Of a stretch of 64,000 nt of DNA, positions 17,112-61,296 are shown in pieces. A program made the position numbers and the translations under genes. The notes under the pieces were generated by a model. The model had not been told where the DNA came from and searched no databases. It saw only the letters and a list, made by a program, of their open reading frames with translations. Position 1 is the stretch's first letter; each line of letters starts with the position of its first letter. The DNA lies in IMG/VR virus record IMGVR_UViG_3300023257_000007, positions 124,001-188,000 of that record; one strand, 5' to 3'.

Positions 17112-17144
17112 GACAAAATTTGTTATTTTTTCTATATATAAAAA

Positions 17145-17763: not shown

Positions 17764-17822
17764 ATTATTACGTTTTTTGATTTAACTTTAATTTATATAT
17801 AAAACAAATATAATAAATTTAT

Positions 17823-31449: not shown

Positions 31450-32196
31450 TTAATCTTTTAAATCATATCTTTGTAAAATTCCTGCAATTATAGGATTTCT
31501 AACAATATCTTCAGGTCTATCTACTATAAATTCATAAACTCCAACACCTTTAGCACCTTTCATTAAAGTGAATGCGTCATATAAACCACTACTATTCTTT
31601 TTATTATACCTATCAGTTTGTTCTAAATCACCACTAATAATAAATTTACTATTAAAACCAATTCTAGTTAAAACAGTTTTCATTTGTTTTGGTGTACAAT
31701 TCTGTGCTTCTTCAAATATTAAAATACTATTATCTATATTCCAACCTCTTAAATAAGCTAAAGCTAAAGGTTTAATTATTTCAGATTCAACTAATTTTTT
31801 TCTATTTTCAATGCCTATTATTTTGTCAATAAGTTTATAAGTTGAATATAAATAAGGTTCTAATTTATCTTCTAAATCACCAGGTAAATAACCTAATTTC
31901 TCTTCTGATTCAACAGCTGGTGTAATAATATAAATATTATGATAATTGTTAGAAGAATCAGCTAATAATTGTAATGCCTTAATTATACTAATATAACTTT
32001 TTCCTACACCGGCAGGTCCTATACAAATTGATATTTGATTACTATCAATTATTTTTATAAAATCTTTTTGTTTTTCATTTTTACATCTAATCTTAACTTT
32101 TTTGCCATATAATATATCTGCAAGTTGTTTATTATTTAACAACTCTTTATCTTTACTTTTTACATTTAATTTTGTTGTTATTATTGGTTTTCTCAT
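31450..32196 (-). CDS. phoH: PhoH-family ATPase
   Basis: GPAGVGKS, PAVESEEKLGYLPGDL, LAYLRGWN, FEEAQN, TRIG..SK.IISGD, RNPII. Confidence 0.92.
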   Translation of the reverse strand: MRKPIITTKLNVKSKDKELLNNKQLADILYGKKVKIRCKNEKQKDFIKIIDSNQISICIGPAGVGKSYISIIKALQLLADSSNNYHNIYIITPAVESEEKLGYLPGDLEDKLEPYLYSTYKLIDKIIGIENRKKLVESEIIKPLALAYLRGWNIDNSILIFEEAQNCTPKQMKTVLTRIGFNSKFIISGDLEQTDRYNKKNSSGLYDAFTLMKGAKGVGVYEFIVDRPEDIVRNPIIAGILQRYDLKD

Positions 32197-39393: not shown

Positions 39394-39466
39394 AAATTTT
39401 TACTATAATTTTAAACTATATATTAAAATGACAAATATGAAACTAGAAAATTTATAGATTATTAAA

Positions 39467-41578: not shown

Positions 41579-42328
41579 TTAAATTTTTTGATAATTGATA
41601 TCAAAATAATAATTAAACTTATAATTCTTAGAAGATTCAGTTTGATTATATGTCATAAACAATTCACCTAAACCATTACTAGGAAACTTCTTAACAACAT
41701 TTAAATTACTTTCCAAATCACCTTTTTGCTTCGCTTCAAATGTGTATTCTGGGTTATATTTCAAAACTGAACTTGTACCTATTTTTTGATCATTTTCAAT
41801 AGAAATATATTCAATATACATATCAATATTTAAAAATTTATATCTATCTAAAACATTCTTTTCTATATAATAATAAATAGATTGATTAATATCTTTATTT
41901 AACAAATCATCATAATAGACAGATTTAAATGCTCTATTCTCTTTAATTTTAACAAATAAATATTCCTTTAAAATTGTCTTAACATCAATGGTATATTCCC
42001 ATATAGTACTAATTTCTCTAATTTTGACGTTTTGTTGGGATTCTTTTATAGTATGATTATCATTTTTTAAAGACGTTAAATTCAATGTAAATACAGTTTC
42101 ATCTCCTACATGTGTTTCACAATCATAATATTGAAATCCATTATTTTTTACTAGATCTCTATCACCAGAAGTGAAAAATTGAGAATATTGTATTGTCTCA
42201 TTATCAATAATAACATCATCTTCGATTTCTAACATTTTAGAACCAAAAAAAGATTTCTCCTCTATCATATTAAGAGTACCAGGTACTCTAGAAGTTTTAA
42301 ATTTTCTTAGTATAAGATTATTTTTCAC
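41579..42328 (-). CDS. Putative structural protein
   Basis: 249 aa, coupled to the 1825-aa gene. Confidence 0.5.
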   Translation of the reverse strand: MKNNLILRKFKTSRVPGTLNMIEEKSFFGSKMLEIEDDVIIDNETIQYSQFFTSGDRDLVKNNGFQYYDCETHVGDETVFTLNLTSLKNDNHTIKESQQNVKIREISTIWEYTIDVKTILKEYLFVKIKENRAFKSVYYDDLLNKDINQSIYYYIEKNVLDRYKFLNIDMYIEYISIENDQKIGTSSVLKYNPEYTFEAKQKGDLESNLNVVKKFPSNGLGELFMTYNQTESSKNYKFNYYFDINYQKI

Positions 42329-45300
42329 TATGTTAAATTCTTTTTTGTATCATCTTTAGATGTATCTAAAACTTCTTTATCTGTAAATATGTAATATTCT
42401 TTATCCCAAGTTGATTTAAATATAAATCTTTCTACATAACTATAACCAAACTCATCAACCATAGGGTAAATTGATCTATCTTCTTCTGTATTTCTTATCT
42501 TTAATACATTTTCCACTGGGTTTATTTTAGAATAAATAATCTCAGAAACCTTACCAAAATCTTCCAGATTTTCATTAAACTTATAATTTCTTTCTAATGC
42601 ATTAAAATAATATTCACCTTCTGTTACTCTTGGCATAGTATAACATACTTGAACTTCAACATTATCAAAATATGCATTATAAGTTGGACTTGATATTGGT
42701 GTAGCCAAAAATACAACATCAAAATCACAATACACACTAAAATCTATATTTATTTCAATGTTACTAGAAGTAACTGCAGAACTTATATCTATACCAGAAA
42801 TTGTATATTTATCTATAATCCAATATGGATTATAAATTGTTGTTTTAGATAAATTATCAGAACTCGTATTATTTATCAAAATATCAACGAGATAGTCTTT
42901 AAAAAACAAATTCTTTTCAATGGATATTAACTTATAATATATAAAATCACCCTTTTTTTTAATAATAACATTAATTTCTGATATAATTGCCTCATTGGGA
43001 ATGTCAAAATTAAAATTAGATAATCTTAATGTATCTGAATATCCTGTTAATGTTACAACAAGACCCGCTGAAATATCAGGTATTAAAAAATCAATTTTAG
43101 CAGAAATATTATCACTTTTATCTAAAATATTTTCTTCATCAACCCAATTTATAACAGTAGTATAACCTGATGTACCACCAGTTAATCCATTTGTAGTTAT
43201 TTCAACATCACTAGCAAAAGATTTTTGACAAAATATTCCATTATGAGATGAATAATCTGTACCATCAAATAATTCAATATTTTTGAAAATAGGTTCATAT
43301 GGCCCACTATATCTATATATTTCTTTATTATAAATTTGTGTTTCACCATGTTGTTGAACCTTTTTACTTATGTCTTTCTCATTTATAGTAATTTTTCTTG
43401 AAATAGGTTCATTAATGTCATAATTAACAGACGCACTAGCATCTACAGGTTTATATTTATCATAAATATTAGTTCTTGGACCTTTCAATGCACTATGATT
43501 AAATGATTGTTTCTTGATAGTTAATAAATCTGGTCTACTAATAGAAACCATATATGGTGGGAAATCTTTGCCCCAAGACTCTAATTCTTCCATGGTACCA
43601 TTTGTAGTGGCACTTGGAACCATATTCATATAAGCATAATTACCATTTTCATCAATATAATGATAATATACATTTCTATCAAATCCATAAGTATTATTTA
43701 AATCATTTAAAGCAGATATTACATTTGAAGCAGTCAATGTAACAGTATTATAACTAATACCTGTATTATTATATGGTGTTCCATCTAATGCCTTAGCATA
43801 ATAATATCCATAATTCTCACCAAATATTTTAATATTATTTAAATCATATAAATCCTTAAACATTGTTAATTTTGTATTAACAACAATTAATAAATTTTTA
43901 TACTTATCATTTAAAAATATATCAATACCAGTATCAGATGTATCAATATAATTTTCATTAATAATTGCAGAACTTTCAAAATCTAATTCATTTACAACTT
44001 CATATAACTCATATGTAGCACCACAAACAACAAAATCAGAAAAATTAGATGTCATATCATCTTCCTCCCAATTATCTAATGAAACATAAATAGTACAACC
44101 AGTATCACCACTAAATTGATATATTTGTGCAGTTAATCTAGTAGAATCAATATAATAAGAACTTCCAGTTGAATAAAAATGAGAATAATCTCCAGTTGTG
44201 TCTATATCATAAAAATCATATAAAGGTAGAGTTAAACCTGCAAATGTAAAACCTGTGGTTTTTATATAATAATCTTTATAATCTATAAAACTAGCATCAT
44301 ATGATCTTTTTAATTTTAAAGGGCCATTGTTAACATAAGCTAAATCTGTAAAACTTGTTAAAGTCATAGTTTGTCCAGTAATAAAACCCCTAATACCTAA
44401 ATTTTCATAATGCCAATTCACAGTATCCATGTATCTTGTTTGATAAAAACTATATCCAGACACATCAACATAATCTGCAATAGTTCTTCCACTATCACCA
44501 TCACTATTATAAACTGTTTCAATATACTGATAACAAGGATTAAATATAATACTACACTTATATTCATCATATTTCTTTTTACCGGAAATTATATTATAAA
44601 TTTTATAATTAGAATCTCTAAATAAATTTGCAACAGAATCTAAATCAATTCTCAAACCTTTAAAAAGAGTTGAAGCTGCATTATAATTATTTGTTGTTTT
44701 AAATATTGAATATTTAGTAGTAGATTTAATATATAGTTGACTCTCATATTCATAATACATCTTATTCTTGAAAAAATAATCAAAATAATCAAAAGTAGAA
44801 CCAACATATAAACTCAAATTAAATTTTTGACTATCATCATTCATTAAATTTGTTTCAATATTAGTACTTTGTTGAACATACTTTTCATTAGTACCATTAT
44901 CATGCAAACCACCAACACGATACATATAATCCATATTTTTATCTGTTACACTTGGAGTATCTTTATAAATATTAGTTGTTTTATTGAATTGTGAGCCTAC
45001 TTTATTATTATTATTTAATTTGTATGAATAATCACTGTGACTTATACTATTCATAAAACCCCATTTACAAACTGTCTCATTTTTAATCCACATAGGATTA
45101 ATATCTTTTGTTTCTGTTATTTGATATAATTCATCTGTAGAAATATACTCTGACGAAACATTCATTATCTTATTTTGACCAGGAACACCTTCTGGCATAA
45201 CTTTAAATTGTTTAGGAGTTGAATTATCTCTAAATTCAGTTGTATATAATTTATGTTCATCAGTATCAACATATTCTGTTTTCTCATAATCAAAATCAGC

Positions 45301-47805
45301 ATAATGTGTATCAACTCTATCAAAATCCCAATCTTTAATATCACTAAATTTAACTCTATAAACAGGATACATTAACGGTTTTCTTAATTTCTTATTTACT
45401 CTTATATCTTTAACTACAGAATATTCTGAATCATTTGATTTAATCCAATATTCTAATTTGGAACTATTAGATTTTATAGCATAATCAGTATCTATATAAT
45501 ACTTTAACTCAATTTCATCATTTTGATCTATCGGCAAATTATATATATTTACATATGTTAATGAAGTATTAGAATCAGTTAAAGCTACAATATTTTCATT
45601 ATAAAACACACCACCAGAATATATATTATCATAATCAATACTAGGACTTAATAAATAATCAGTTAAAGTATCAGTTAAAGTATCATATTTCATTAATCCA
45701 GTACTAGCACTATTTTCAAACCACTTAAAAATTACATTATTATTATTATCATAAAAAACATGAGATGTTGAACCAGTAATATCATAACTAGTTGTTTGTG
45801 TAATATTTTTTTCATAATATTCTTTTTTAATAAACAAACCTTCAGTAGTACCCAAAAAAATTGTTCCATCATCTTTTAAATCAAATGTTAAAGGAATACC
45901 TTCCATAGACGTATTTGCAGAATTATATTCAACAGAAGCTATAGGTTCTAAATCATAATAAACTGTAAAAATACCTGCATCTAATCCATTACTAATAACA
46001 CTATATAAATTATTATTTTGTACTTCAATTTTACAATTAAAAACATCTCCTGTTACATTTGTATTATAAAATGTAACATCATATTTATTAGAAAGTTTTA
46101 CAGACCAAGATACAGTTAAAGTACCACCAGATCGAGCACAGGCAAAAATTGTAGAACCTGTAACAAAAATACTTTTAATTTGTTCAGCATCTTCTATACC
46201 AGAATTTAAATTAGTAATTGTATCTTCTACACCACTATCAAAATCTTTAATCCACATTCCTTCATATGTACCAACATACAATACATTATTATCTAAAAAT
46301 AATGATTGCACACCTGAATTTGGTAATGAAGAATTTGAAGTAGTATATGAATTTAATAAAACTAAATCTATATCATATATGAATAAACCATCATCAGCAC
46401 CAATGTAAATCTTATCATCATTAAAATAAACTACATTAAATGGTGGAATTGATTCTGTGATTGATGTATAAGAATAAGCAATATCTGATTTCTCAATAAT
46501 ATTTTGTTCAACTTTTAAAACATGAAACTTGTTGTCAATATCAACTAAATACAAATCACCATATAATCCCTTGAAATATCCATCATCATCAATATACGTA
46601 TCACAAGTAAATTCACCAGTTCTGCCATTTACAACATTTATATAAGATGTACCAGTATTTTGAAAAACAATATCAACAATATTATCACTATGAATATCTG
46701 TAATAGATAAATCATAATCACTTATAATTTTATATGTATCAACATTATCATCACTCTTTTTAACTACTCTATATAAATCTTCTAAAGCATAAATATAATA
46801 CTCATTATTATTATCCCAAGTATTAATAAAAGGCATGGTTGAACCAGTTGTTCCACTAACAACAAATATATTATTTACAATATCTAAACCATCTATTAAT
46901 GTAGGTGGTTGATATGAAGTTAAGTTACAAACCTCATCCATTTGTTCCACATAAAAACCATAATATCTATTAACAGAATATTTATTTAAACCGAAAGGTG
47001 ATGCAGGTGTATCATCATATAAAAATTTAAAGTTGACAATGCTTGGAAATATCAAATTATTTAATTGATACCCCTCCGTTATAAATTGTTCTAATTGAAA
47101 ATGTGGTTGTTCATAATATAATTTATCATCTAAAAAGAAATCCTTTTCAGTATAAGTACCATAATCATAATCAATACCATACCATCTACTAAAATTATAT
47201 TTTTTAGCATCAAACTCAAATGGAGATTCAGGAAATCTGTCATTTTCAGTAAAATTTCTATACATCCAATATCCTAAAGGTGATTGATAAGTTAAATCAA
47301 ATGTTGTAACACATTTCCATTTATCCACAATCTCACTTCTAAAATTATTTTTAGTTAAATTTACTATTTCATATGAATTACTATCATAAACTGCAGAATC
47401 ATCAACTCTTAATATAATAAAATTTGAAGGTAAATTGTTAGGTCTAATATATAGAGGAGCCAAATATTCAAATTCTTCTTCATACCACTGATCTTGAATA
47501 TTTTTAGCACCAGCATAATAAATATCATCAAATTGACAATCATATGTATTATACATTTTATCACTATCATCTTCATATTTAACTTTAAAAGCTAAATTAG
47601 AAGGCAAACCTTTATAAAATATAGGTAATTGATCCTCCAAATAAGTATTCTTATTCATAGAAAAATGTTTAAATCTTTCATCACTTAATTGTCTATTAAC
47701 CTTGAAAGATTCTAAATATAAGTTATAATCAGTATTAACCACTACACTTACATTTGTTGTAAGTGTAGGATTAGTTCTTATTATTTGAAAACTTTTATCT
47801 ATCAT
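42328..47805 (-). CDS. Very large putative virion protein with a central beta-propeller-like segment
   Basis: 1825 aa; blade-like repeats 'NSSLPNSGVQSLFLDNNVLYVGTYEGM', 'DDKIYIGADDGLFI', 'DDGTIFLGTTEGLFI'. Confidence 0.55.
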   Translation of the reverse strand: MIDKSFQIIRTNPTLTTNVSVVVNTDYNLYLESFKVNRQLSDERFKHFSMNKNTYLEDQLPIFYKGLPSNLAFKVKYEDDSDKMYNTYDCQFDDIYYAGAKNIQDQWYEEEFEYLAPLYIRPNNLPSNFIILRVDDSAVYDSNSYEIVNLTKNNFRSEIVDKWKCVTTFDLTYQSPLGYWMYRNFTENDRFPESPFEFDAKKYNFSRWYGIDYDYGTYTEKDFFLDDKLYYEQPHFQLEQFITEGYQLNNLIFPSIVNFKFLYDDTPASPFGLNKYSVNRYYGFYVEQMDEVCNLTSYQPPTLIDGLDIVNNIFVVSGTTGSTMPFINTWDNNNEYYIYALEDLYRVVKKSDDNVDTYKIISDYDLSITDIHSDNIVDIVFQNTGTSYINVVNGRTGEFTCDTYIDDDGYFKGLYGDLYLVDIDNKFHVLKVEQNIIEKSDIAYSYTSITESIPPFNVVYFNDDKIYIGADDGLFIYDIDLVLLNSYTTSNSSLPNSGVQSLFLDNNVLYVGTYEGMWIKDFDSGVEDTITNLNSGIEDAEQIKSIFVTGSTIFACARSGGTLTVSWSVKLSNKYDVTFYNTNVTGDVFNCKIEVQNNNLYSVISNGLDAGIFTVYYDLEPIASVEYNSANTSMEGIPLTFDLKDDGTIFLGTTEGLFIKKEYYEKNITQTTSYDITGSTSHVFYDNNNNVIFKWFENSASTGLMKYDTLTDTLTDYLLSPSIDYDNIYSGGVFYNENIVALTDSNTSLTYVNIYNLPIDQNDEIELKYYIDTDYAIKSNSSKLEYWIKSNDSEYSVVKDIRVNKKLRKPLMYPVYRVKFSDIKDWDFDRVDTHYADFDYEKTEYVDTDEHKLYTTEFRDNSTPKQFKVMPEGVPGQNKIMNVSSEYISTDELYQITETKDINPMWIKNETVCKWGFMNSISHSDYSYKLNNNNKVGSQFNKTTNIYKDTPSVTDKNMDYMYRVGGLHDNGTNEKYVQQSTNIETNLMNDDSQKFNLSLYVGSTFDYFDYFFKNKMYYEYESQLYIKSTTKYSIFKTTNNYNAASTLFKGLRIDLDSVANLFRDSNYKIYNIISGKKKYDEYKCSIIFNPCYQYIETVYNSDGDSGRTIADYVDVSGYSFYQTRYMDTVNWHYENLGIRGFITGQTMTLTSFTDLAYVNNGPLKLKRSYDASFIDYKDYYIKTTGFTFAGLTLPLYDFYDIDTTGDYSHFYSTGSSYYIDSTRLTAQIYQFSGDTGCTIYVSLDNWEEDDMTSNFSDFVVCGATYELYEVVNELDFESSAIINENYIDTSDTGIDIFLNDKYKNLLIVVNTKLTMFKDLYDLNNIKIFGENYGYYYAKALDGTPYNNTGISYNTVTLTASNVISALNDLNNTYGFDRNVYYHYIDENGNYAYMNMVPSATTNGTMEELESWGKDFPPYMVSISRPDLLTIKKQSFNHSALKGPRTNIYDKYKPVDASASVNYDINEPISRKITINEKDISKKVQQHGETQIYNKEIYRYSGPYEPIFKNIELFDGTDYSSHNGIFCQKSFASDVEITTNGLTGGTSGYTTVINWVDEENILDKSDNISAKIDFLIPDISAGLVVTLTGYSDTLRLSNFNFDIPNEAIISEINVIIKKKGDFIYYKLISIEKNLFFKDYLVDILINNTSSDNLSKTTIYNPYWIIDKYTISGIDISSAVTSSNIEINIDFSVYCDFDVVFLATPISSPTYNAYFDNVEVQVCYTMPRVTEGEYYFNALERNYKFNENLEDFGKVSEIIYSKINPVENVLKIRNTEEDRSIYPMVDEFGYSYVERFIFKSTWDKEYYIFTDKEVLDTSKDDTKKNLT

Positions 47806-47819
47806 AATTTATAATAATT

Positions 47820-50800
47820 TTATTGAAAACCTACTGATACTTGTGATTGTGTTGATATATAATTAGCCGTTCTGTGTTGTTTCATATTAAATATCAAAGT
47901 AAATTGGAACGGTCTAATACTGTTCTCAGTTTCTACAAATATTTTCAACGGTCTCTTTAATATACGTGAAACAGGTTTTTCAGTTGGATTTATAGTAAAT
48001 GAACTTCCACTTACAGCATCAAACTTAAAATATAAATTTATTGGTATAATCATCTCTTCTTGACCATTTATTAATTTCAACTTTTCCTGTCCTGTGTCAA
48101 TTAAATCTGATATATCTATAACTAATGGATATATACTAGATAAAAATGCATTTTGGTTTGTTAATGTCCCATCAGTCCAACTAATACCAGTTAACAAATT
48201 GAACGTATAATCATCTCTAGTAAAAGTTGTCCCTGTTAATCCAAGATTTGAACCATATGTTCCACCATCAGCATTTAACCAATTATAAGCAGTTGCTTTA
48301 TCAGACTCTGTTATACCTGAATATAAATTCTGTCCGTTGTGATTATCAGAAAACCAAAGAAATTGATTGTCTTCTTGATTATGTAGATAACCATCAGCAT
48401 CAATATAACAGGATGAATCATCTGTAAATTGAAAGAAACTATTTGTTCCACCAACTGTATAATTTCTATCAGAAAATAAACCTAATGGGTTATTTTGTGC
48501 AATATTCTTCAAACTAATATAATAATCTTTTATAACATAAATATTATTATAATAAATTCTATCTGCAGTAGCACCACTTATTTCTCCATAATCTTCACAT
48601 TCAACTATAATATTAGTTTCCGAATTATTACCAATTTCAGTTTCTGTTGTACCTTTAAATAATGTAACAAGAAGTTCACCTTTAGCTCTACTAACTTGTT
48701 CTTCTAAAGAAGATATCTTATTTGTTAATGTTTCTAAATAATCAAATAAATTAATTAAATTACCTTGAGCATCTCTAAATGACGTTGCCAAAGTTTTATC
48801 ATTATGTGCATAATAACTATCATTTTGAGTAAAACTATCTCTAACGTGTCTATAAACACCTTTAGCATCCATTTCATTATCAAATTCAACTCTTACTGAT
48901 TCTTGACTATTTTGTAATGTTATTAATTGAGAATCATCATTAGTGTTTTCATATTCATCAGGAAAATCAATCTTAACAATATCCGACCATTCTGATTCAA
49001 TCAAAGCATCGGGCCAACCAACCTCAGAAATAGATTTAACTTTTATTTCAATAGATTCATTTTCCTTAATGGGAATATCTACTTGATTTATATTTGGTTT
49101 TTCTGCATTTGCAACATCTTCAACAACCCAATACCACACATTTTTGGTACTATCAAAACTTCTCTCTCTAGGTTTTGTTACATATTCTTTCCAATTAGAA
49201 AAGAAACCATTAGTATTTTGTGTTTGTAATATAGTTTGATTACTTAAAGGTATTTTTTGACCAGATGCAGTTGTTATAACTGTATTAGTTGGTGATGGTG
49301 TCATACCAATAGAAGGTGCATTAATTTGTGAACTTCTAGGAGTAAATTCAGCACTACTACTTTCAGGATTATTTATAACCGATCCACTTGTTGTTGGATC
49401 TGGTTTTAAGTTTGGTTGCGTTAATAAACTTGTATCAATAGTTAAACCTTGTTGACCAGATAAATCTTCTAAATTCACAGTAGGTTTAATATCAAAACTC
49501 TCTATTGGATTAGTTTGACCATCTTTAGCACTATATCTATACTGAATTTTAAATGCAACCACATCTTGTATTTTATCTTCAAGACTTCTAGCCATTGGAA
49601 TATCAAAGAAACCTCTTAATCTATATTTAGGGCTTGCAGATAAAGTTGTAACAACATTAGAAATTTGATTAACAATTGAGCCATATTGTTTAGATTCACT
49701 CTCTTGTTGTGTTATAAGTCTATTTAACTCATTTTGAGATTTATTTTTTTCACCAATACTTTTATATTGTTTTGTGTTTAATTCTTTATTTTTTTCAATA
49801 ATAGAATCATTTAATTGGTTTAATCTAGACTTAATAGATTCTTTTCTTGTATGTAAATCTTTCTTTTCTTTTGAATTTCCATTATCTGTAAGATGTTTAT
49901 TAATTTGTACAACTTTAAAATTATCTATTTCCAATACTGGTTTATTTGGAATTAATGCCTCATCAGTTGGTGTTTGTCTTCTTATTAAATCTTTTAATAA
50001 TTTACCATAATCATATATATTATCTAAATAATAACTTGTCAAATCTATCGTATTATCCGTATTTAATACTAAATCATTTGTATAAAATGCACTACCTTGA
50101 GACCAAACACTACCAATTATATTATTATCAGTATTTACAGGTTTCATAAATACAAGATTATATTCATTATAACCCACACCAATATTAACAGATTTATCTA
50201 ACTCACCAGCTGAGTATATCTTTAAAACATCTGTTCCAACAGGAATAGGATCATAACCTTCAACTCTTTCAACTATTATCTTAGGCGTAGATGAAGCTTT
50301 ACTAATTTCAATTATTTTATATCTAGTATTACTTTCTTTTTTATTTATTATTATTTCATCATTAATAGATAATTCTTTATTAACACCATCTTTAGTTCTA
50401 TAAGTTAGAGTATTTAAGTGATACCAAAATTTCTTTCTTATTGTATCATCCTCTGTATTTAAAACACTAAAAAAACCAACATTATTTAATGTTTGTAAAT
50501 TAATATCATAAATATCTTCATCCAAATATTTATAAGGGTCCAAATTATCAACAACACCTGGTTGAGCCAAGTACCAATTAATAAAAGTGTCATAATTAAT
50601 ATCTGATTTATTCAAAAATGTGTCTATAAAACTATTTAAAGAATTTCTTCCTGTCTCTGTTAATTGTCCATAACTACCAACTTGAAATTTTACAATATGT
50701 CTCCTTACCAAAACTTTCTTATTCCTATCATCAATTTTACCAGTTAAATCAAAATTTACATGTATGTTAGGGTTAATTAATTCTTCGAAAAACCAGTTAG

Positions 50801-51170
50801 TTTTACTTTCAAATTTATCAATGTTATTTAAATTACTAATAGGTACAGGTTCTCTATTAAGATCAACTTGATAGATCTTTTTTGTAGTTTGTCCATCTAT
50901 AATATAAGTTGAACCTTGACCTTCTCCGCCTGTTAATTTTTTAATATTTTGATTTAGTAAATCTATTTGTGATTTCAAATAACCAACTGTAGGCATCTGA
51001 AATGTTGAATTAGTATAATTACCACTATTATCTTTTATCACCCAATCAACTGTTACATTACTATCATTAGTTGATAGTAGATCATTTATTGATGATAAAA
51101 TTTCTATACTATTTTTATTAAGAATAGCAATATCTTCTAATAATTTAACAAAGGAATTTTCTTGACTCAT
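47820..51170 (-). CDS. Large putative virion/baseplate protein with coiled coils
   Basis: 1116 aa; late-type promoter TTTAATATATAA upstream; S/T/P-rich insert near 49230-49420. Confidence 0.5.
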   Translation of the reverse strand: MSQENSFVKLLEDIAILNKNSIEILSSINDLLSTNDSNVTVDWVIKDNSGNYTNSTFQMPTVGYLKSQIDLLNQNIKKLTGGEGQGSTYIIDGQTTKKIYQVDLNREPVPISNLNNIDKFESKTNWFFEELINPNIHVNFDLTGKIDDRNKKVLVRRHIVKFQVGSYGQLTETGRNSLNSFIDTFLNKSDINYDTFINWYLAQPGVVDNLDPYKYLDEDIYDINLQTLNNVGFFSVLNTEDDTIRKKFWYHLNTLTYRTKDGVNKELSINDEIIINKKESNTRYKIIEISKASSTPKIIVERVEGYDPIPVGTDVLKIYSAGELDKSVNIGVGYNEYNLVFMKPVNTDNNIIGSVWSQGSAFYTNDLVLNTDNTIDLTSYYLDNIYDYGKLLKDLIRRQTPTDEALIPNKPVLEIDNFKVVQINKHLTDNGNSKEKKDLHTRKESIKSRLNQLNDSIIEKNKELNTKQYKSIGEKNKSQNELNRLITQQESESKQYGSIVNQISNVVTTLSASPKYRLRGFFDIPMARSLEDKIQDVVAFKIQYRYSAKDGQTNPIESFDIKPTVNLEDLSGQQGLTIDTSLLTQPNLKPDPTTSGSVINNPESSSAEFTPRSSQINAPSIGMTPSPTNTVITTASGQKIPLSNQTILQTQNTNGFFSNWKEYVTKPRERSFDSTKNVWYWVVEDVANAEKPNINQVDIPIKENESIEIKVKSISEVGWPDALIESEWSDIVKIDFPDEYENTNDDSQLITLQNSQESVRVEFDNEMDAKGVYRHVRDSFTQNDSYYAHNDKTLATSFRDAQGNLINLFDYLETLTNKISSLEEQVSRAKGELLVTLFKGTTETEIGNNSETNIIVECEDYGEISGATADRIYYNNIYVIKDYYISLKNIAQNNPLGLFSDRNYTVGGTNSFFQFTDDSSCYIDADGYLHNQEDNQFLWFSDNHNGQNLYSGITESDKATAYNWLNADGGTYGSNLGLTGTTFTRDDYTFNLLTGISWTDGTLTNQNAFLSSIYPLVIDISDLIDTGQEKLKLINGQEEMIIPINLYFKFDAVSGSSFTINPTEKPVSRILKRPLKIFVETENSIRPFQFTLIFNMKQHRTANYISTQSQVSVGFQ

Positions 51171-51289
51171 TTTGAAATGAATTTATTTTTTATTATATAT
51201 TAAATTGAATCAATTAAAAGAAGGAAAATGATAATTATTATTTATCATAATTTTACGCCATTTTTAGCTAATGATAATAAGTTAAGTAA

Positions 51290-52964: not shown

Positions 52965-54596
52965 ATGATCACAATAAACGATCTTAACATACACTTCCCA
53001 CTAAAACTTATACCAAGAAACCAACAAATAGAATCACTACATTTTGTTAAAGAATCAATTAATACTGGTAATAAATTTGTACTTCTTAATATACCAACAG
53101 GTGTGGGTAAATCATATTTCGCAATAATGTTTATGAACTGGTATAGAAACTTTGTTAATGAAGATGCAAAATTTGATATTTTAACAAACTCTAAAGTACT
53201 ACAAAACCAATATATAAAAGATTATGTTTTTATAGAAAATTTTAAAGGTAGAAGTAATTATAAATGTGAACCTTTTAACACAGACTGTGAACAAGGAAAA
53301 GAATTATGTTCAATTATGAAAAGAAAATGTTCAGATTGTCCATATGATATGGCAAAAGAAAAATGGAAAAACAGTAATATCTCACTTACAAACTTCCATT
53401 TATTTAACACAATTGCATTATATTTGCCATCTTTATTAAAAGAAAGATCTTCTAATGTTCTATTAATAGATGAAGCACACGATTTTGAAAATGTTTTTTG
53501 TGATTTCATTTCAACAAGATTAAATGTTAGAGGTCTTAAAATGATGGGTTTTACATTATCAGAATTAGAAAAAATAGACAAACAAATACAAAAAGTAAAA
53601 AGGATTGACCAATATGTTAATTTACTTGAACGAGTTATAATACCAGACTTAAATGAAAAAGATGTACTATTTTCAAAAGAGGTTATAGAAAAATCAATTA
53701 CATCAAAAAGAAAAACAGAAATAACTAAATATATATCTCAAATACAAACAAACAAATTAAAATATAAAAACTTTATCGAAGAATTCAAAAAAAATAAAAA
53801 TAACTGGGTTCTAGATATTAATCTTAACAAAAAAGCCAAAATATATTCCGGAATTGAATTAATAACACAACCAGTATGGGGTAATGAATATTTAAAAGAA
53901 TCTATATGGGATAAATATGACCATGTTATATTTATGTCTGGCACCATTCTAAATAAAGAAATGTTTAGCTATATAAATGGACTGGATAAAGAAGTTTCAA
54001 CATATTATGAAATGAATAGTCCATTTTCTATTAAAAGAAGACCAATATATTATATAAAAGCTGGTAAAATGACTTATAATGAAAAAATAGAAACATTCAA
54101 AAATCAAAAAGAATGGATTAAAAAAATTATAAAGAAAAACGCTAAAAGAAAAGGTATAATACATACAACTACATATGAATTCGCAGATATGTTAAAAACC
54201 CAAATTTATAACAAAAGATTAATTTTTCATGAAACAAAAAACCGTGAAGAAATGTTAAATAAACATATTGATAGCAAACAACCGACAATATTAGTAAGCC
54301 CAAGTATGAATAGTGGTGTTGATTTAAAAGATGATTTAAGCAGATTTCAAATTATAATGAAAATACCTTTCCCAAATATTAGTAGCAATAAGATTAAGCA
54401 AAGACAAAAAACAAATAAAGAATGGTATAACTGGAAAACATGTGTTGATTTTATTCAATCTTATGGTAGGTCATTGCGATCTGAAGAGGACTGGGCTGAA
54501 ACGTATGTACTAGATTCTAGTTTATCAACGTTACTTAAATATAATAGTAATTTAATTCCGAGATATATCACTGACGCTATTAAAGTTCTAAAATAA
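52965..54596 (+). CDS. DinG/XPD-like SF2 helicase
   Basis: PTGVGKS, Cys cluster (CEP...C...C...CSDCPY), DEAH, MSGT, GVDL, KIPFP, QSYGRSLR. Confidence 0.85.
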   Translation: MITINDLNIHFPLKLIPRNQQIESLHFVKESINTGNKFVLLNIPTGVGKSYFAIMFMNWYRNFVNEDAKFDILTNSKVLQNQYIKDYVFIENFKGRSNYKCEPFNTDCEQGKELCSIMKRKCSDCPYDMAKEKWKNSNISLTNFHLFNTIALYLPSLLKERSSNVLLIDEAHDFENVFCDFISTRLNVRGLKMMGFTLSELEKIDKQIQKVKRIDQYVNLLERVIIPDLNEKDVLFSKEVIEKSITSKRKTEITKYISQIQTNKLKYKNFIEEFKKNKNNWVLDINLNKKAKIYSGIELITQPVWGNEYLKESIWDKYDHVIFMSGTILNKEMFSYINGLDKEVSTYYEMNSPFSIKRRPIYYIKAGKMTYNEKIETFKNQKEWIKKIIKKNAKRKGIIHTTTYEFADMLKTQIYNKRLIFHETKNREEMLNKHIDSKQPTILVSPSMNSGVDLKDDLSRFQIIMKIPFPNISSNKIKQRQKTNKEWYNWKTCVDFIQSYGRSLRSEEDWAETYVLDSSLSTLLKYNSNLIPRYITDAIKVLK

Positions 54597-54603: not shown

Positions 54604-54627
54604 AACCTCCTATTAATATAGGAGGTT
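54604..54627. terminator. Terminator between convergent genes
   Basis: AACCTCCTAT-taat-ATAGGAGGTT. Confidence 0.65.
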
Positions 54628-54630: not shown

Positions 54631-54996
54631 TTATTTATTGTATGATCCTGTGTTTGTCCAATCTCTTTTAGTTACCAATCCTGTTTGTTTTTTAAATTCT
54701 GTTTCTTGTGTTATTGATAAATTTTTATAACCATTTACAAGATTTGTAACTTTATCTAAACCTTTTTGATATGTTTCATCCGTTTCATCTTCAAATTTTT
54801 TATACCATTTTTTAGTAATAGCTGACCACATAGGTTCACTACCCACCTCCGGATGATTTTCCTTATAATCTTGTAAATATTTTGTGCATTCTTCATAATC
54901 ACCACAATTATCTATGTAATCCAACACATCTTGTAAATCATTATCATCTTGTAAATCATTATCTTGTAAATTTTCAAATTTTTTTAAGTGTTTCAT
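54631..54996 (-). CDS. Hypothetical protein with CTS-like leader (MKHLKKFENL)
   Basis: True start probably 54996; upstream AAAAAAAACGATT is shared with the 646 gene; LQD(D)ND mini-repeats. Confidence 0.65.
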   Translation of the reverse strand: MKHLKKFENLQDNDLQDDNDLQDVLDYIDNCGDYEECTKYLQDYKENHPEVGSEPMWSAITKKWYKKFEDETDETYQKGLDKVTNLVNGYKNLSITQETEFKKQTGLVTKRDWTNTGSYNK

Positions 54997-55030
54997 AATC
55001 GTTTTTTTTTTGTTGTCATTTGACATATAT

Positions 55031-55651
55031 TTAAAATTTTTGGATAAACCAAAAATTATCTCTTCCCCAAGTGGTCTTTACAATTTTCCCTTTAGCTTGT
55101 AAATCAGTTAAAACATTATTAACATCAGCTTCAGAAAAACCAACATGACCAGCAATAGTATAAGAACTCATCTTAACACCTTTATCTTTCATAACATGTA
55201 AAACATCATTACCTATTTCATTAATATCTTTAGAAATACCTTTAGTTTTTCCTAAAGTATTTAAACCTTTTGGTCCTTCACTTTGTAAATCATTAATAGT
55301 CTTAGAAATACCTAAAACTGGTTTTGCAATAGCTGGTCCTTTAGCTTTTGTATCATTCAATTGATCTAAACTATAACCTGGTTGATTACCTTCAAATTTT
55401 TGAATAAATTCAAATTTATCGTGTCCTAATATATTATTCTTAACGATATGACCACCGTCTTCTAGACCTTTTAGTATATTGTTAACTTGAGCTACAGTAA
55501 CAGCACCACCCAAAGCGGTTTTAATTGACATAGCAGTTGCAGGAACGCCTTTATCTTTCATTGCTGATATAACTTGATCTTTTAAATCACCTATTTCTTT
55601 TGCTACTTTATTAGCTTCTGTGATAAACTCTGTTAATGTTTTAATTTTCAT
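55031..55651 (-). CDS. Tandem winged-helix (Z-alpha-like) protein with CTS-like leader
   Basis: Leader MKIKTLTEFITE|A; two similar domains each containing MKDKGV...VNN(I/V)L..L...G.IVK...F.FIQKF. Confidence 0.6.
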   Translation of the reverse strand: MKIKTLTEFITEANKVAKEIGDLKDQVISAMKDKGVPATAMSIKTALGGAVTVAQVNNILKGLEDGGHIVKNNILGHDKFEFIQKFEGNQPGYSLDQLNDTKAKGPAIAKPVLGISKTINDLQSEGPKGLNTLGKTKGISKDINEIGNDVLHVMKDKGVKMSSYTIAGHVGFSEADVNNVLTDLQAKGKIVKTTWGRDNFWFIQKF

Positions 55652-55696
55652 AATAACAATTATTATTTTTTCTTTTACTTATATATAAAAGTTAAA

Positions 55697-55755
55697 AATT
55701 CATTTTTTTAATTCAATACTATATATAAAATTCGATTACCTAAAATTTTTAAACT
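55697..55755. repeat. 59-bp exact direct repeat, copy 1, containing a late-type promoter
   Basis: aattcatttttttaattcaatactatatataaaattcgattacctaaaatttttaaact, identical to 56531..56589. Confidence 0.95.
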
Positions 55756-55756
55756 A

Positions 55757-56530
55757 TCATAATTTTATATTTGGAAATAGGTTTTTAACATTATCATAAT
55801 AAAGATTTCTAATATCATCTATAGATATATTAAATTCTTCTAATAAATTAGTTGGAGAATGTTTAGTTTTACCTGTCAGAACATCTTCAAAAAAATTTAA
55901 TTTTTCGTCTAATAAAGTTTTAAAATCTGATTTTTGTCTTTTTGCCATTTTATTTATACCTCTTAAGTATGCTAAAATTTCATCTGGTGTGATGATTTTA
56001 TTTAATAATCCATTTTTTTCTTTAATCATTATGTTATATAAATGTTTATTATTATAAGTAATATTATATCTTTTAGATAATTTATCATTATAATCTGATT
56101 TAACCATGTCGATTATTTCATCTGTAAAGTATTTTTGGAAATGTGACATTTCATGATCAACTAATTCAGATATTTTATAAGATAATTCCTCATATATTTT
56201 TTTAATATTGAGTGGATTTAATTTAATTTCTTCAATAGGAATACTAAATGTTATTACACTTACAAATATCATAAAATTTGTAGTTTTTGGTAAAATTTGA
56301 CCACCAACTTTAACTGAATAATTATCACTTTTTTTAAAATTGATATCAATATCAAAATAAAATCTAATATCATCAAATTTTTTTTCCTCTTTAATTTTTA
56401 TACTCTTTGAATCATTAATATTTTCAACATTCTCAATTATATCAACACATTTATTAAAAAAATATTTTTGTAATGATTTTCTAATCTCTCTCTTTAAATT
56501 AAAATATTCGTAATATTTAATATACTTCAT
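55757..56530 (-). CDS. Putative zincin metalloprotease (HExxH) with CTS-like leader
   Basis: MKYIKYYEYF leader; ELVDHEMSHFQ and a downstream helix DEILAY. Confidence 0.55.
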   Translation of the reverse strand: MKYIKYYEYFNLKREIRKSLQKYFFNKCVDIIENVENINDSKSIKIKEEKKFDDIRFYFDIDINFKKSDNYSVKVGGQILPKTTNFMIFVSVITFSIPIEEIKLNPLNIKKIYEELSYKISELVDHEMSHFQKYFTDEIIDMVKSDYNDKLSKRYNITYNNKHLYNIMIKEKNGLLNKIITPDEILAYLRGINKMAKRQKSDFKTLLDEKLNFFEDVLTGKTKHSPTNLLEEFNISIDDIRNLYYDNVKNLFPNIKL

Positions 56531-56589
56531 AATTCATTTTTTTAATTCAATACTATATATAAAATTCGATTACCTAAAATTTTTAAACT
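56531..56589. repeat. 59-bp exact direct repeat, copy 2
   Basis: Abuts the ATG of 55757..56530. Confidence 0.95.
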
Positions 56590-56645
56590 TATAACTCTTA
56601 TTAATATATATTTTTCGGAGAAACACATAAAATTCAATAAATATT

Positions 56646-59600
56646 ATGACGAAAAAACTTGAAGAACGATATAAAAAATTAACCCATCGTGAGCATATTC
56701 TACAACGACCAGAAACATATATTGGTTCAACTGTCACAGAACTTAAAAAAATGTTCATTATCGAAGATATAAATGATATTAAAAATTTAAATATTGTAAA
56801 TCAAATGGTACATTATAATCCAGGTTTTATTAAAATATTTGATGAAATAATTACAAATGCATCAGATCATTATATTAGAACAAAAAAAGTCAAATATATT
56901 AAAGTTATTATAGAAAAAGATCATATTTCAATTGAAAATGATGGTCCTGGCATACCAGTAGAAATACATAAAAAAGAAAAAATTTATGTACCAGAATTAA
57001 TATTCGGTCACCTTTTAACTGGAGAAAATTATGACGATACAGAAGAAAGAATAGTAGGCGGTAGAAACGGATATGGTTCAAAACTCACTAATACATACTC
57101 AACGAAATTTATTGTAGAAACTGCAGATGGTACAAATAAATATAAACAAGAATTTTCAAATAATCTTGAAATAAAAGGTAAACCAAAAATTACAAAAAAT
57201 AAAAAGAATTTTACAAAAATAACATTCTATCCAGATTTTAATAGATTTGGTCTAACAGAAATTACAGAAGAACTTCAACAAATAATGCTGAAAAGATGTG
57301 TGGACATATCTGTATATTGTCCAAATGTAAAAGTATATTATAACAATACATTAATACCTGTTAAAACATTTAAAGACTATATGAAAATGTATGTTGAAGA
57401 CCAAGACTATTTTTATGAAAAAGTAAACACATCATGGGAGATTGGAGTATCCAAATCCGAAGACGATTTATTCCAACAAATATCAATGGTAAATAGTATA
57501 TCAACTTATCAAGGTGGAACTCATGTTAATTTTATAACTAAACAAATAACAAAAGGTGTTGCTGATATCTTAAATAAGAAATATAAAAATATTAATATTA
57601 AAGAAGCAGATATTAAAAGAAACCTTTTCATATTCGTTAATTCTAAAATAGTAAATCCTTCTTTTGATACACAAACAAAAGAAAACCTAATAACAAGAAT
57701 GACACAGAAAAACACTGAAGGTGTAAACATATCAGATAAATTCTTGAAATTGCTAGCTTCTTCAGAAATAATGGAGAGCGTTCTTAGATATATCGAAGCA
57801 AAAGAAAAATCATCATTGGCTAAAGAAAGTGGTAAGAAGGTTTCTAAAGTTAGGATTAAAAAACTTGACGATGCAAATAAAGCAGGTACTACTCAATCAC
57901 AAAAATGTATGTTATTCTTAACAGAAGGTGATTCAGCTTTATCTACGGCTTTATCAGGATTCGCAGTAACAGGTAGAGATTATTATGGAGCATTCCCCTT
58001 GAAAGGAAAACCTTTGAATGTCAGAGACATCGCAATGGATAAAATACGAGCCAATGAAGAAATTAAAAACATAGTATCAGCATTAGGATTAGAATATGGT
58101 AAAAAATATAAATCAACAAAAGATCTGAGATATGGCAAAGTTGTTATTATGTCTGACCAAGATTTGGATGGATATCACATTAAAGGATTATTAATAAATC
58201 TATTTGATACATTTTGGCCCGAATTATTACAATTAGATTTTTTATATGAATTTATAACACCAATTGTTAAAGTAACAAAAGGAAAACAATATAAATATTT
58301 CTACAGATTAGAAGAATATAGAAAATGGAAAAATAGCTCAGATACAAAAGGATTTTTTGTTAAATATTATAAAGGTCTTGGTACAATAGAACCAAAGGAA
58401 TCTAAAAGATTTTTCAAAAATATCGCAAAACACTTAATAAGATTTAATTATAAAGATGAAGAAAAAACCGAAAATCTTATTGATTTAGCTTTCAATAAAA
58501 AAAGAGCAGAAGATAGGAAAAAATGGTTACTTAACTATAATCCAGCCAACGAAATAGATAAATTCACAACAAAAACAACTATTGATTCATTTATAGACGA
58601 TGAACTAATAGAATTTTCAATGGCAGATAATATAAGATCAATACCTTCATTGTTAGATGGTTTAAAACCATCACAAAGGAAAATCTTATTTACAATGTTT
58701 TTGAATAATTATAAAAATGAAGTTAAAGTCAATCAACTAAGTGGTTCTATTATTGATAAATCAGCATATCACCATGGACCTGCTAGTTTAGAACAAGGCA
58801 TAGTTGGAATGGCACAAAATTTTGTTGGTTCCAATAATATAAACTTATTAGTACCAAATGGTCAATTTGGTACAAGAATAACTGGTGGTAAAGATAGCTC
58901 TGCGTCAAGATATATCTTCACAAAATTAAATAAAATATCTAATGTTATTTTTGATAAAAGAGATACAGATGTTTTAAATCACAATTATGATGATGGTAAG
59001 AAAATAGAACCTGAATATTATATACCAGTAATACCAATGATACTTGTAAATGGTGCAAAAGGAATCGGAACAGGTTATTCTACAGATATTACACAATTTA
59101 ATCCTGTTGATATAATAGAATATTATGAAAACAAACTCACTAAAAAGAAAACAGACAAAATAATAAAGCCTTGGTTCAATGGATTTAAAGGTGAAATTAA
59201 ATGGGATGAAGAAAATGGTAGATATCTAACAAAAGGTATTTATGAGAAATTAAATGCAACAACAATTAGAATAACAGAATTACCAATCGGTACCTGGAAT
59301 GATAAATATTTTGATCATTTAGATAAATTAATTGATAGAAAAGTTATTAAAGATTATACCAAAAATTGTACTGATATAGAAATAGATATTACTATTAATA
59401 TAGGTAGAGAAGAAATCCAAAATATTGATAGTATTAATAAAGTTTTTAATCTTATTAGTTATATAAGCCTAGACAACTTAAACGTGATGGATAAAGAAGG
59501 TAAAATAAAGAAATATAAAGATCAATATGAAATATTAGATGATTTCTTAGTTATAAGATTAAATTATTATAAATTAAGAAAAGAAAATATGTTAGCTAAA

Positions 59601-59909
59601 TTAAAACGTGAAAAATCTATTCTTTATAATAAAATGAAATTTATCAAATATATTCTAGAAGATAAACTGGATTTTAAAAACAAAAAAAGAGTAACAATAG
59701 AAAAATCCATGATCGAATTAGGCTTAAAAAAAATTGATGATAATCTAGATTATTTGTTAAATATGAACTTTTTATCATTAAGTAATGAAAAATTACGTGA
59801 TTTAAAAAACACATATGAAAATAAAAAGAGTGAAATTGATGTTATTCAAAATATATCAATAAATAAAATGTGGTTAACTGATTTACAAAATGTTAAAAAA
59901 TTATTATAA
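56646..59909 (+). CDS. Single-polypeptide type IIA DNA topoisomerase
   Basis: REHILQRPETYIGS, DEIITNASD, GGRNGYGSKL, TEGDSA, PLKGK, DQDLDG, RSIPSLLDGLKPSQRK, AYHHG, SASRYIF. Confidence 0.93.
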   Translation: MTKKLEERYKKLTHREHILQRPETYIGSTVTELKKMFIIEDINDIKNLNIVNQMVHYNPGFIKIFDEIITNASDHYIRTKKVKYIKVIIEKDHISIENDGPGIPVEIHKKEKIYVPELIFGHLLTGENYDDTEERIVGGRNGYGSKLTNTYSTKFIVETADGTNKYKQEFSNNLEIKGKPKITKNKKNFTKITFYPDFNRFGLTEITEELQQIMLKRCVDISVYCPNVKVYYNNTLIPVKTFKDYMKMYVEDQDYFYEKVNTSWEIGVSKSEDDLFQQISMVNSISTYQGGTHVNFITKQITKGVADILNKKYKNINIKEADIKRNLFIFVNSKIVNPSFDTQTKENLITRMTQKNTEGVNISDKFLKLLASSEIMESVLRYIEAKEKSSLAKESGKKVSKVRIKKLDDANKAGTTQSQKCMLFLTEGDSALSTALSGFAVTGRDYYGAFPLKGKPLNVRDIAMDKIRANEEIKNIVSALGLEYGKKYKSTKDLRYGKVVIMSDQDLDGYHIKGLLINLFDTFWPELLQLDFLYEFITPIVKVTKGKQYKYFYRLEEYRKWKNSSDTKGFFVKYYKGLGTIEPKESKRFFKNIAKHLIRFNYKDEEKTENLIDLAFNKKRAEDRKKWLLNYNPANEIDKFTTKTTIDSFIDDELIEFSMADNIRSIPSLLDGLKPSQRKILFTMFLNNYKNEVKVNQLSGSIIDKSAYHHGPASLEQGIVGMAQNFVGSNNINLLVPNGQFGTRITGGKDSSASRYIFTKLNKISNVIFDKRDTDVLNHNYDDGKKIEPEYYIPVIPMILVNGAKGIGTGYSTDITQFNPVDIIEYYENKLTKKKTDKIIKPWFNGFKGEIKWDEENGRYLTKGIYEKLNATTIRITELPIGTWNDKYFDHLDKLIDRKVIKDYTKNCTDIEIDITINIGREEIQNIDSINKVFNLISYISLDNLNVMDKEGKIKKYKDQYEILDDFLVIRLNYYKLRKENMLAKLKREKSILYNKMKFIKYILEDKLDFKNKKRVTIEKSMIELGLKKIDDNLDYLLNMNFLSLSNEKLRDLKNTYENKKSEIDVIQNISINKMWLTDLQNVKKLL

Positions 59910-60416: not shown

Positions 60417-60809
60417 TTATAATGTAGGTAAATTTGAAGTTGGTCCTGACATTAATCGACCAGATTGTTTTGCTGGCATATAAACCCATTTTGTATGTTT
60501 TTTATCAATACCAATCAATCCTCTAAATTTATCTACTTCTGCTTCTTTTACTAATTCATCAACATCTTTTTTAGTTAACTTTAATTTAGTTCTATGTGTT
60601 TGTAAAATCTTTTGTTTATGTTTAGTATTTTTATTTAGTTTATTAAATTTTTCTAATATATCACCTTCTACACCAAGTTTTGTCATCAATTCAGTCCAAC
60701 CTTTTTTTACTTTTTCTAAATTTGCTTTATCTTCTTTTGACATAAATGAAAAACCTTCATCTATTTGATTCTCTTTTGAGAATGATTCATATGTCATTAA
60801 ATGTTTCAT
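60417..60809 (-). CDS. Basic hypothetical protein with CTS-like leader (MKHLMTYESF...IDE|G)
   Basis: 130 aa; TTTAATATATAA upstream. Confidence 0.7.
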   Translation of the reverse strand: MKHLMTYESFSKENQIDEGFSFMSKEDKANLEKVKKGWTELMTKLGVEGDILEKFNKLNKNTKHKQKILQTHRTKLKLTKKDVDELVKEAEVDKFRGLIGIDKKHTKWVYMPAKQSGRLMSGPTSNLPTL

Positions 60810-60927
60810 AATTTTAATTTTATTTTTCTTTATTTTATATATTAAACAAAAAAATTCATTTTTTAATCCATTGAAATTTTTAATTTTTGAAAAAATTCCG
60901 TATATTTAATTAAACTAAAACACTAAA

Positions 60928-61296
60928 ATGAAAAAATTAATTAAAATATTGATAACAATTTATAACGTAATATCAATACCTAGTATATTAATACACGAAC
61001 TTCTACACATAATTGCAACCTATTTAACAGGAAACACAGTTAATTGGTATAATTCAGAATTTAGATGTTATCTAGACACCGGTGAAATGTATGCCTCTGT
61101 AGTAATTAATAAAAAATTAACAAAGGTAAAATCAGCAATAATATCTATGGCTCCTATATTTGCGGTATTGTTAACTCTATCTTTAAGTTTTATTTCCCCT
61201 TTCTTTATATATATATTAGCTTACCAAGCAACAACTTTCATATATTCATTACCAAGCAAAACCGATTTTGAAGATTTTTTAGACTTATTAGAATAA
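60928..61296 (+). CDS. Small membrane-embedded HExxH metallopeptidase (DUF3267/M50-like)
   Basis: LIHELLHIIA within a hydrophobic helix; 'SMAP' and 'LPSKTDF'. Confidence 0.55.
   Translation: MKKLIKILITIYNVISIPSILIHELLHIIATYLTGNTVNWYNSEFRCYLDTGEMYASVVINKKLTKVKSAIISMAPIFAVLLTLSLSFISPFFIYILAYQATTFIYSLPSKTDFEDFLDLLE

Follow-up and report, generated by a model that had tools for sequence, protein, structure and literature searches.

How did a single gene of a large phage come to lie between two identical copies of a promoter-bearing sequence, and can it be gained or lost through them? The question is raised by positions 55697-56589 of a 64-kb stretch of DNA (positions 124,001 to 188,000 of IMG/VR record IMGVR_UViG_3300023257_000007), here called the window; all coordinates are positions within the window, and full examination was confined to these 64 kb of the genome. 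Exact direct repeats of 59 bp are found at 55697-55755 and 56531-56589, with a start-to-start distance of 834 bp, and the sole sizeable open reading frame (ORF) between them, 55757-56530, encodes a protein of 257 aa with an HExxH motif. An earlier note, made from the letters alone, had described this locus as an excisable cassette carrying an injected protease. The arrangement itself is real and is most likely a case of promoter-cassette shuffling, a process already known in kind from T4-type phages.

The repeat pair and its promoter-like motif

The elements of the locus are as follows.

55679-55690, minus strand: a further promoter-like motif, TTTTATATATAA, proximal to a gene for a 206-aa protein, whose ATG follows after 27 nt
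55697-55755, minus strand: downstream repeat copy, starting 1 nt past the TGA of the HExxH gene, with its motif at 55719-55730, 67 nt ahead of the following gene's ATG
55757-56530, minus strand: HExxH ORFan of 257 aa, with HEMSH at residues 126-130 and the N-terminus MKYIKYYEYF
56531-56589, minus strand: upstream repeat copy, abutting the ATG at 56530, with the motif TTTTATATATAG at 56553-56564, 22 nt before that ATG

The start of the 257-aa ORF at 56530 is fixed by an in-frame TGA two codons before the ATG, and the TGA stop occupies 55757-55759. The earlier description of two identical copies, one at the start codon and the other 1 nt from the stop, which together delimit a unit of 834 bp, was thus confirmed to the precision of the ORF. 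No match to the 59-mer was found in any of 100 dinucleotide-preserving shuffles with up to 3 mismatches allowed, and identity is lost sharply at either end of the 59-mer. Extensions of the match to 76 nt and, with gaps, to 73 nt were rejected as being at chance level for AT-rich DNA. A search of the window at 3 mismatches gave no copies beyond the two. A dispersed family of the exact 59-mer was rejected as well, since an exact 19-mer search located only two copies in the 348-kb genome; one further match to a 19-mer from the repeat, in a giant-virus metagenome-assembled genome, was taken as chance.

Single contigs of five separate samples (ENA or JGI assemblies), one of them 239.7 kb long, contain the pair without a letter changed. 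The 348-kb IMG/VR contig has the repeat pair, the 344.6-kb contig has both copies too, on two loci, and a 907-nt Logan contig (run X5) bridges the downstream copy. An assembly artefact, the objection that the earlier note had raised against itself, is rejected, as contigs of five samples and several assemblers span both repeats.

Each repeat copy carries one instance of T(T/A)ATATATA, the commonest promoter-like motif of the phage, in the form TTTTATATATAG on the minus strand. The window has 44 instances of the motif, of which 26 fall in the 6% of the DNA that is non-coding (94% of the window is coding in our ORF set). Nearly all intergenic instances face a start codon in the same orientation, mostly 19-34 nt off, and the motif-bearing starts include those of a type II DNA topoisomerase, of ORFs of 1116 and 726 aa, and of many small ORFs. 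The form T(T/A)ATATATA(A/G) is seen, for example, at 8731-8740, 17132-17141, 39416-39425 and 51193-51202, the last of these upstream of a pair of ORFs of 1825 and 1116 aa; palindromic forms lie between divergent genes at 17793-17802, 24084-24093 and 9207-9216. A similar motif is located about 36 nt before the topoisomerase gene of a related phage contig (L013), whose topoisomerase is 62% identical. T(T/A)ATATATA is best read, from its distribution, as the main promoter element of the phage, and the T4 late promoter, TATAAATA, is the obvious analogy. The promoter claimed for the repeat is a real copy of this phage-wide promoter-like motif and stands at the usual distance from the ATG.

The 206-aa gene has two such motifs, that of the repeat at 67 nt and its own proximal one at 27 nt. 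The latter belongs to a module, 55667-55708, that extends over the final 12 nt of the downstream repeat. A counterpart with 83% identity is found at 60823-60864, where it precedes the gene at 60417-60809. Because its inner end is embedded in a module that recurs before another gene, the downstream copy would seem to be native, which suggests that the upstream copy is the duplicate.

The variable interval and the origin of the arrangement

The repeats and the HExxH gene lie in an interval with the following borders and contents.

52965-54596, plus strand: DEAD_2/XPD-like helicase of 543 aa, conserved left border of the variable interval, 54% identical in the related contig L010
54604-54627, bidirectional: GC-containing hairpin followed by T-runs, the sole terminator-like site in the region
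54631-54996, minus strand: ORF of 121 aa with the start MKHLKKFENL, one of the shared-leader ORFs described below
55031-55651, minus strand: protein of 206 aa with two winged-helix-like halves (DUF7343; Lrs14-like), downstream of and co-oriented with the HExxH gene
56646-59909, plus strand: fused type II DNA topoisomerase of 1087 aa, divergent, conserved right border of the variable interval

Relatives with a 54-62% identical topoisomerase carry unrelated genes at this site and share the helicase alone. In L010 and L015 (topoisomerase 54% identical) the helicase adjoins the topoisomerase, and the intervening ORFs are unrelated to the three found here; in L014 (58%) a large nuclease-like ORF lies directly upstream; and in L013 (62%) the upstream ORF, read by eye, resembles S-adenosylmethionine decarboxylase. 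As L010, L013 and L014 hold different genes there, the interval between helicase and topoisomerase is, on this comparison of contigs, a variable region. The topoisomerases of L010 (from 5998) and L014 (from 6322) have an intein-like insertion after the Toprim region (..DADCIEENT.. / ..DADCIDENT..), absent from the topoisomerase of the window.

The 206-aa protein is likely a DNA-binding regulator, as judged from its winged-helix-like halves. A longer reading of the 121-aa ORF from 55026 is probably spurious; a one-base length polymorphism at 55002, in the A-run 54997-55011 before the MKHLKKFENL start (contig L004, run X5), alters the length of the apparent ORF, 131 aa becoming 121 aa, and supports 54996 as the true start. 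The hairpin at 54604-54627 forms the end of the unit of three minus-strand genes, where this meets the convergent helicase gene, and no terminator-like site is found between the HExxH gene and the 206-aa gene. Since the hairpin is the sole terminator and none follows the repeat, the genes for the 257-, 206- and 121-aa proteins would thus form one unit with internal promoters. The topoisomerase gene has its own promoter-like motif at 56602-56611, outside the repeat.

Gain and loss of genes through promoter repeats, without a transposase, is a mechanism documented in T4-type phages, as the earlier note had supposed (PMC2839356, PMC4122927). The elements concerned are the promoter-early stem-loop (PeSL) cassettes (Arbiol et al. 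2010, PMC2839356; Comeau et al. 2014, PMC4122927). ORFans flanked by PeSLs, their loss between close relatives, and mini-circles have been documented, and recombination between PeSLs deletes the ORFan or frees a mini-circle able to re-insert at another module (PMC2839356; PMC4122927). The present locus resembles these cassettes in several respects: a promoter-bearing intergenic module stands on both sides of an ORFan, from stop to start, in a variable region such as the hyperplastic regions in which PeSLs are found; the repeats offer a substrate for transposase-free deletion, mini-circle release or insertion, by which an inserted gene would gain a promoter; and genes for recombination and replication of the T4 type are present in the phage (UvsX, gp32, UvsW, gp41-like helicase and the topoisomerase). 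PeSLs combine a sigma-70 -35/-10 promoter with a stable, often G/C-rich stem-loop terminator and are present in about 50 imperfect copies per genome, whereas the module described here has the phage-specific T(T/A)ATATATA, no stem-loop or terminator, and two perfect copies. As no sigma-70 promoter and no stem-loop was found and the 59-mer itself has just two copies, although its core motif and other promoter modules recur in the window, the site was not filed as a PeSL proper; it is a variant that probably works like one.

With an ORF between identical promoter modules, a variable region and a T4-type set of recombination genes, PeSL-like shuffling is the best explanation, and on balance, by a modest preponderance, we favor an origin of the bracketed ORF by homologous recombination of this kind. 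Either the 834-bp unit, consisting of ORF, 1 nt and module, would have recombined into a single resident module before the 206-aa gene, or an equivalent unequal exchange with a co-infecting relative would have taken place. The new ORF would land exactly behind a ready-made promoter, a copy of which would stay with the old downstream gene in addition to the proximal promoter belonging to that gene. The repeats would in turn be a substrate for precise loss of the ORF via the UvsX-type recombination of the phage.

Several results weigh against this origin. The 59-mer occurs just twice in the genome, compared with the roughly 50-member families formed by PeSLs. Its folding energy (minimum free energy -1.3 kcal/mol, z = +1.6 vs shuffles) gives no sign of a stem-loop, and the 115-119-nt contexts of the repeat also fold no better than shuffles. 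A consensus scan found no sigma-70 site in the 59-mer, and the region overall has 21 such sites vs 23.2 expected from shuffles. No compositional sign of recent foreign origin, in codon use or GC content, was detected in the HExxH gene: it uses codons in the manner typical of the phage, and at 19.0% it has the lowest GC content of the 66 ORFs, so that a foreign origin by composition is not supported. The exact identity of the repeats could stem from gene conversion instead of recency.

Population data point in the same direction. The read-level data were assembled Logan contigs, in which k = 31 is shorter than the 59-bp repeat, so that contigs break at the repeat and rare variants are dropped. 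No joint skipping the 834 bp was seen in Logan contigs of 4 runs; the empty-site pattern had 0 matches in IMG/VR; no circle junction was present in the assembled contigs examined; and protein look-ups of the gene returned the same genomic context only, with no alternative cassette. The claim that the cassette is excisable therefore found no support in assembled contigs, IMG/VR and protein look-ups. Low-coverage runs X7 and X8 have gaps over the gene and are uninformative, and run X6 contains a gene variant about 96% identical, in which the 16 letters past the stop disagree with the repeat. Closer relatives were sought in viral and metagenome contigs with the topoisomerase and the 206-aa protein as queries; the searches gave only the same clone or sequences of 54-62% amino acid identity, and no relative close enough to show an empty site was found in these contigs and IMG/VR. 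All recovered genome copies are 99.9-100% identical to the window; as all are one clone, recency as opposed to fixation, and mobility, are not judgeable from them. The arrangement looks fixed and the event undatable.

Such observations lend some weight to an old, fixed duplication of the regulatory region beside a stable resident gene, kept identical by gene conversion or by selection on a binding site, for example for the 206-aa winged-helix protein; we consider this possible, though unlikely. The arrangement is invariant in every assembly and no empty allele is present in the contigs, but all assemblies represent one clone, so that invariance says little. The three spaced GAATT words that can be recognized in the 59-mer by inspection could be binding sites; selection on a promoter, however, would not be expected to hold all 59 positions, and the other promoter modules of the window, 42-54 nt long, recur at only 76-83% identity. 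The native codon use of the gene and a diverged paralog in the same genome, indicative of a long-established family, agree with a resident gene, whereas a phage with UvsX-type recombination is expected, from general knowledge of T4, to recombine direct repeats of 59 bp. A remnant of a tandem duplication was also considered and rejected, as the HExxH gene and the 206-aa gene share no homology.

The HExxH protein and the shared leader

No DNA or protein match to the gene was found in phage GenBank, and the first word-based and exhaustive HMMER searches returned almost nothing. Iteration via a fragment of a paralog led to a 10-member family and to the C-terminal domain of gp088 of Flavobacterium phage vB_FspM_immuto (YP_010114595.1), which belongs to the same family (hhalign 99.1%, E 1e-18). 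The paralog is encoded in the window in two pieces, which were analysed separately.

26702-27187, plus strand: paralog of the N-terminal half, 161 aa, with the leader MKHLKTYNEKF, ending 4 residues past HEFSIMTH
27184-27636, plus strand: paralog of the C-terminal half, 150 aa, with an ATGA overlap with the preceding ORF; IHPDEVKAYLRGWYKVSK fits the family block PDE..A...G....AK

HEFSIMTH aligns to HEMSH with a 3-residue insertion, and the C-terminal piece carries the block PDE..A...G....SK (BLASTP E 4e-10). The paralog at 26702-27636 represents either a copy that is split or in decay, or a version with two subunits.

Residues H126, E127, H130, E184, A187, G191, A196, K197 and P253 are invariant in the 10 sequences. 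Both residues of interest in the earlier note are among the conserved features: the HEMSH motif is present at residues 126-130, within an HExxH that is invariant in the family, and the downstream glutamate corresponds to E184, which lies in a P-x-E-x-x-A block and in a predicted helix (low-confidence model). Most members have RHExEH..Q, EG(R)YD at the beginning and NLPAAQY at the end. The window's protein is, by its alignment, a divergent member of the family. HExxH is also found in immuto gp088, which shares the blocks EGRYD, RHEIEH and PxE..A...G.Y..AK; this protein has 907 aa, of which the domain makes up the last 200 residues behind about 700 others (NC_055915.1; L032 1898-4621). Its GenBank name, nicotinamide mononucleotide adenylyltransferase, refers to its other parts. 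The family is unannotated and phage-only, with stand-alone and fused members, and similar-looking ESM Atlas clusters have more than 100 members.

Our own AlphaFold2 models reached a predicted local distance difference test score (pLDDT) of 50 from a single sequence and 58 from 4 sequences; the order of secondary structure in them, a helix, four strands and a long helix with HExxH, agrees with that of a zincin. The ESM Atlas models of P0001 and P0007 have predicted template modelling scores (pTM) of 0.61 and 0.74, respectively. Their Atlas neighbours are large clusters of phage hypothetical proteins, with template modelling (TM) scores up to 0.83 for P0007 and of about 0.57-0.71 for P0001, and the nearest named folds are Peptidase_M48, M56, U49 and DA1 (TM 0.36-0.44). 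The likeness to M48/M56-type peptidases (HtpX, Ste24, BlaR1) and to mini-gluzincins consists in an HExxH on a long helix after a small beta-sheet, an invariant Glu located 54 residues past the second His, on a later helix, and in the rank of these peptidases as nearest named folds to the Atlas models; the differences are the TM of only 0.36-0.44, the lack of a match to a Pfam peptidase profile and the lack of membrane segments here.

Further points count against a protease. The protein has HEMSH vs HExEH in most relatives and is without the EG(R)YD block. No curated family or structure was matched at thresholds in Pfam, PHROG, NCBIfam or PDB, the last searched by sequence and by profile, the sub-threshold matches being SprT (E 0.018, P0002) and Peptidase_M91 (E 0.006, immuto gp088, residues 634-678). 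Foldseek searches of PDB and AlphaFold database clusters, and VIA-align, with our own models of pLDDT 50-58 gave noise only. A zincin fold is not demonstrated, and the Atlas models show a weak M48-type likeness. We put the chances at about even that the protein is a small metallohydrolase of gluzincin-like type, and it may plausibly act as a protease. Leads to LPD23 and SprT from the Atlas feature search were unconfirmed by Pfam. A second HExxH ORF of 122 aa (..IHELLHII..) is located at 60928-61296 on the plus strand, 4.4 kb from the first; it has a weak match to Pfam DUF3267 and may be another small zincin-like protein.

The N-terminal leader that the earlier note had seen on the gene is a genuine shared motif, far beyond chance: at least nine ORFs of the window begin MK(H/Y)(L/I)K(K/T/Y)(F/Y)(E/N) and have unrelated bodies (starts at 646, 961, 21228, 26488, 26702, 32400, 52377, 54996 and 56530), with about 0.01 expected by chance according to our estimate. 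Four of them (646, 961, 21228 and 54996) share an A-rich stretch of 15 nt before the start, AAAAAAAAAACGATT followed by ATG, and similar N-termini occur in the relatives L010 and L014. The leader may serve as a tag for packaging, mark a region of initiation or act as a site of recombination.

In T4, the internal proteins are diverse anti-defence proteins with only the capsid targeting sequence (CTS) in common (PMC3012670), and this sequence is MKTYQEFIAE (PMC8442874). The ORF might by analogy be a capsid-targeted, injected protease effector, with MKYIKYYEYF acting as a T4-like CTS, and would then enter the host together with the DNA and cleave host proteins, a reading to which we assign a low probability. 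The likeness lies in unrelated small accessory proteins sharing a short N-terminal motif, and it extends to relatives of the protein: P0006 starts ..YTEFINEG and P0007 ..FQEFINEG, both near the T4 sequence, and in L024 (3812-7100) P0002 and four neighbouring genes share the leader MKFSYAY(I/L)..KIA..P.EL or a close form, with unrelated bodies and with three starts nearly identical in DNA. For the family as a whole, the idea of a packaged effector retains some standing on these grounds. The T4 internal proteins are, however, not HExxH proteins, and the N-terminus of the present protein, MKYIKYYEYFNLKRE, is only loosely similar: it shares the general CTS pattern, but an (I/L)-x-E prohead-protease site is absent from it, while P0006 and P0007 have ..EFINE|G. 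Packaging, cleavage and injection would here be read from sequence resemblance. Moreover, the leader ORFs are scattered over the window, not clustered; the motif consists nearly entirely of A/T-only codons and may mark an initiation region, given 0 Shine-Dalgarno sequences in 66 ORFs; the homolog P0005 sits among small early-type genes; and in immuto the domain ends a 907-aa protein that is devoid of such a leader. A 435-aa PolyA_pol-head protein (CCA-adding/poly(A) polymerase-like) at 30075-31382, minus strand, has the N-terminus MNKLYKYSEFLNEN, which is close to the T4 capsid targeting pattern Y.EF(I/L).E.

Less likely again, and a long shot in our judgement, is the more general proposal that the phage runs an ORF-precise, transposase-free cassette platform, with the promoter modules as recombination sites and the shared leader as a packaging or expression tag. 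The direct repeats flanking a single gene could finally call to mind the target-site duplication or terminal repeat of a transposon, miniature inverted-repeat transposable element or homing element, or an artefact of assembly, but this is highly improbable, as 59 bp far exceeds the length of target-site duplications known so far, and no gene for a transposase, integrase or homing nuclease is present in the 834-bp unit. Terminal inverted repeats of significance are likewise absent (28 nt at 75% complementarity, in AT-rich DNA, being the best pair), and both copies are contained in single contigs obtained with several assemblers from several samples.

The source phage and the reach of the finding

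Two IMG/VR contigs, of 348,222 bp and 344,634 bp, contain the same sequence, as do salt-lake and marine metagenome assemblies from ENA, JGI and Logan, with Antarctic salt lakes among the sources. The T4-like replication and recombination set, together with the length of these contigs, places the window in the genome of an uncultured jumbo phage, about 345 kb in size and with 25% GC, that is T4-like in the wider sense; the GC content of the window is 23-29% throughout (mean about 25%). The genes on which this placement draws, and other recognizable genes, are listed below.

2401-3564: gp5-like baseplate hub
9366-10610: UvsX-like recombinase
10643-11980: gp41/DnaB-like helicase
12711-15236: class I ribonucleotide reductase
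24483-25439: gp32-like protein
31450-32196: PhoH
39467-41023: UvsW-like helicase

A Shine-Dalgarno 4-nt core (AGGA, GGAG or GAGG) within 20 nt before the start was found in 0 of the 66 ORFs, and translation initiation looks, from the upstream sequences, Shine-Dalgarno-independent. Bacteroidota are not known to use Shine-Dalgarno sequences, and the single cultured phage with the domain of the HExxH protein infects Flavobacterium; on these two grounds Bacteroidota are a reasonable guess for the host, with Flavobacteriia as the first guess.

Two giant neighbouring ORFs on the minus strand, 42328-47805 and 47820-51170 (1825 and 1116 aa), have no Pfam match, and the sole match of the 1116-aa ORF is PHROG 29329, of unknown function. 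At least 11 imperfect repeats of 42-45 nt are found at 22235-23011, minus strand, inside an ORF of 650-670 aa (22112-24064/24124); the array encodes a W/G/N-rich repetitive protein, possibly a fibre or adhesin.

If the cassette platform were true, unrelated accessory proteins would be swapped behind ready-made expression and delivery signals, with the 59-bp pair caught in mid-act, and the platform would be a phage analogue of the integron for injected or early-acting effectors, including new small metalloproteases. The phage-restricted HExxH domain family merits a family definition; neither it nor a wider reach of PeSL-type shuffling overturns current understanding. If the repeats mediate gain or loss, PeSL-type shuffling would reach beyond the enterobacterial, Vibrio and Aeromonas T4-like phages, to an environmental phage of 345 kb and 25% GC, probably with a Bacteroidota host, and to modules with a different promoter type and no terminator hairpin. 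A regulatory repeat together with general recombination would then be a generic route for the trade of accessory genes in large phages.

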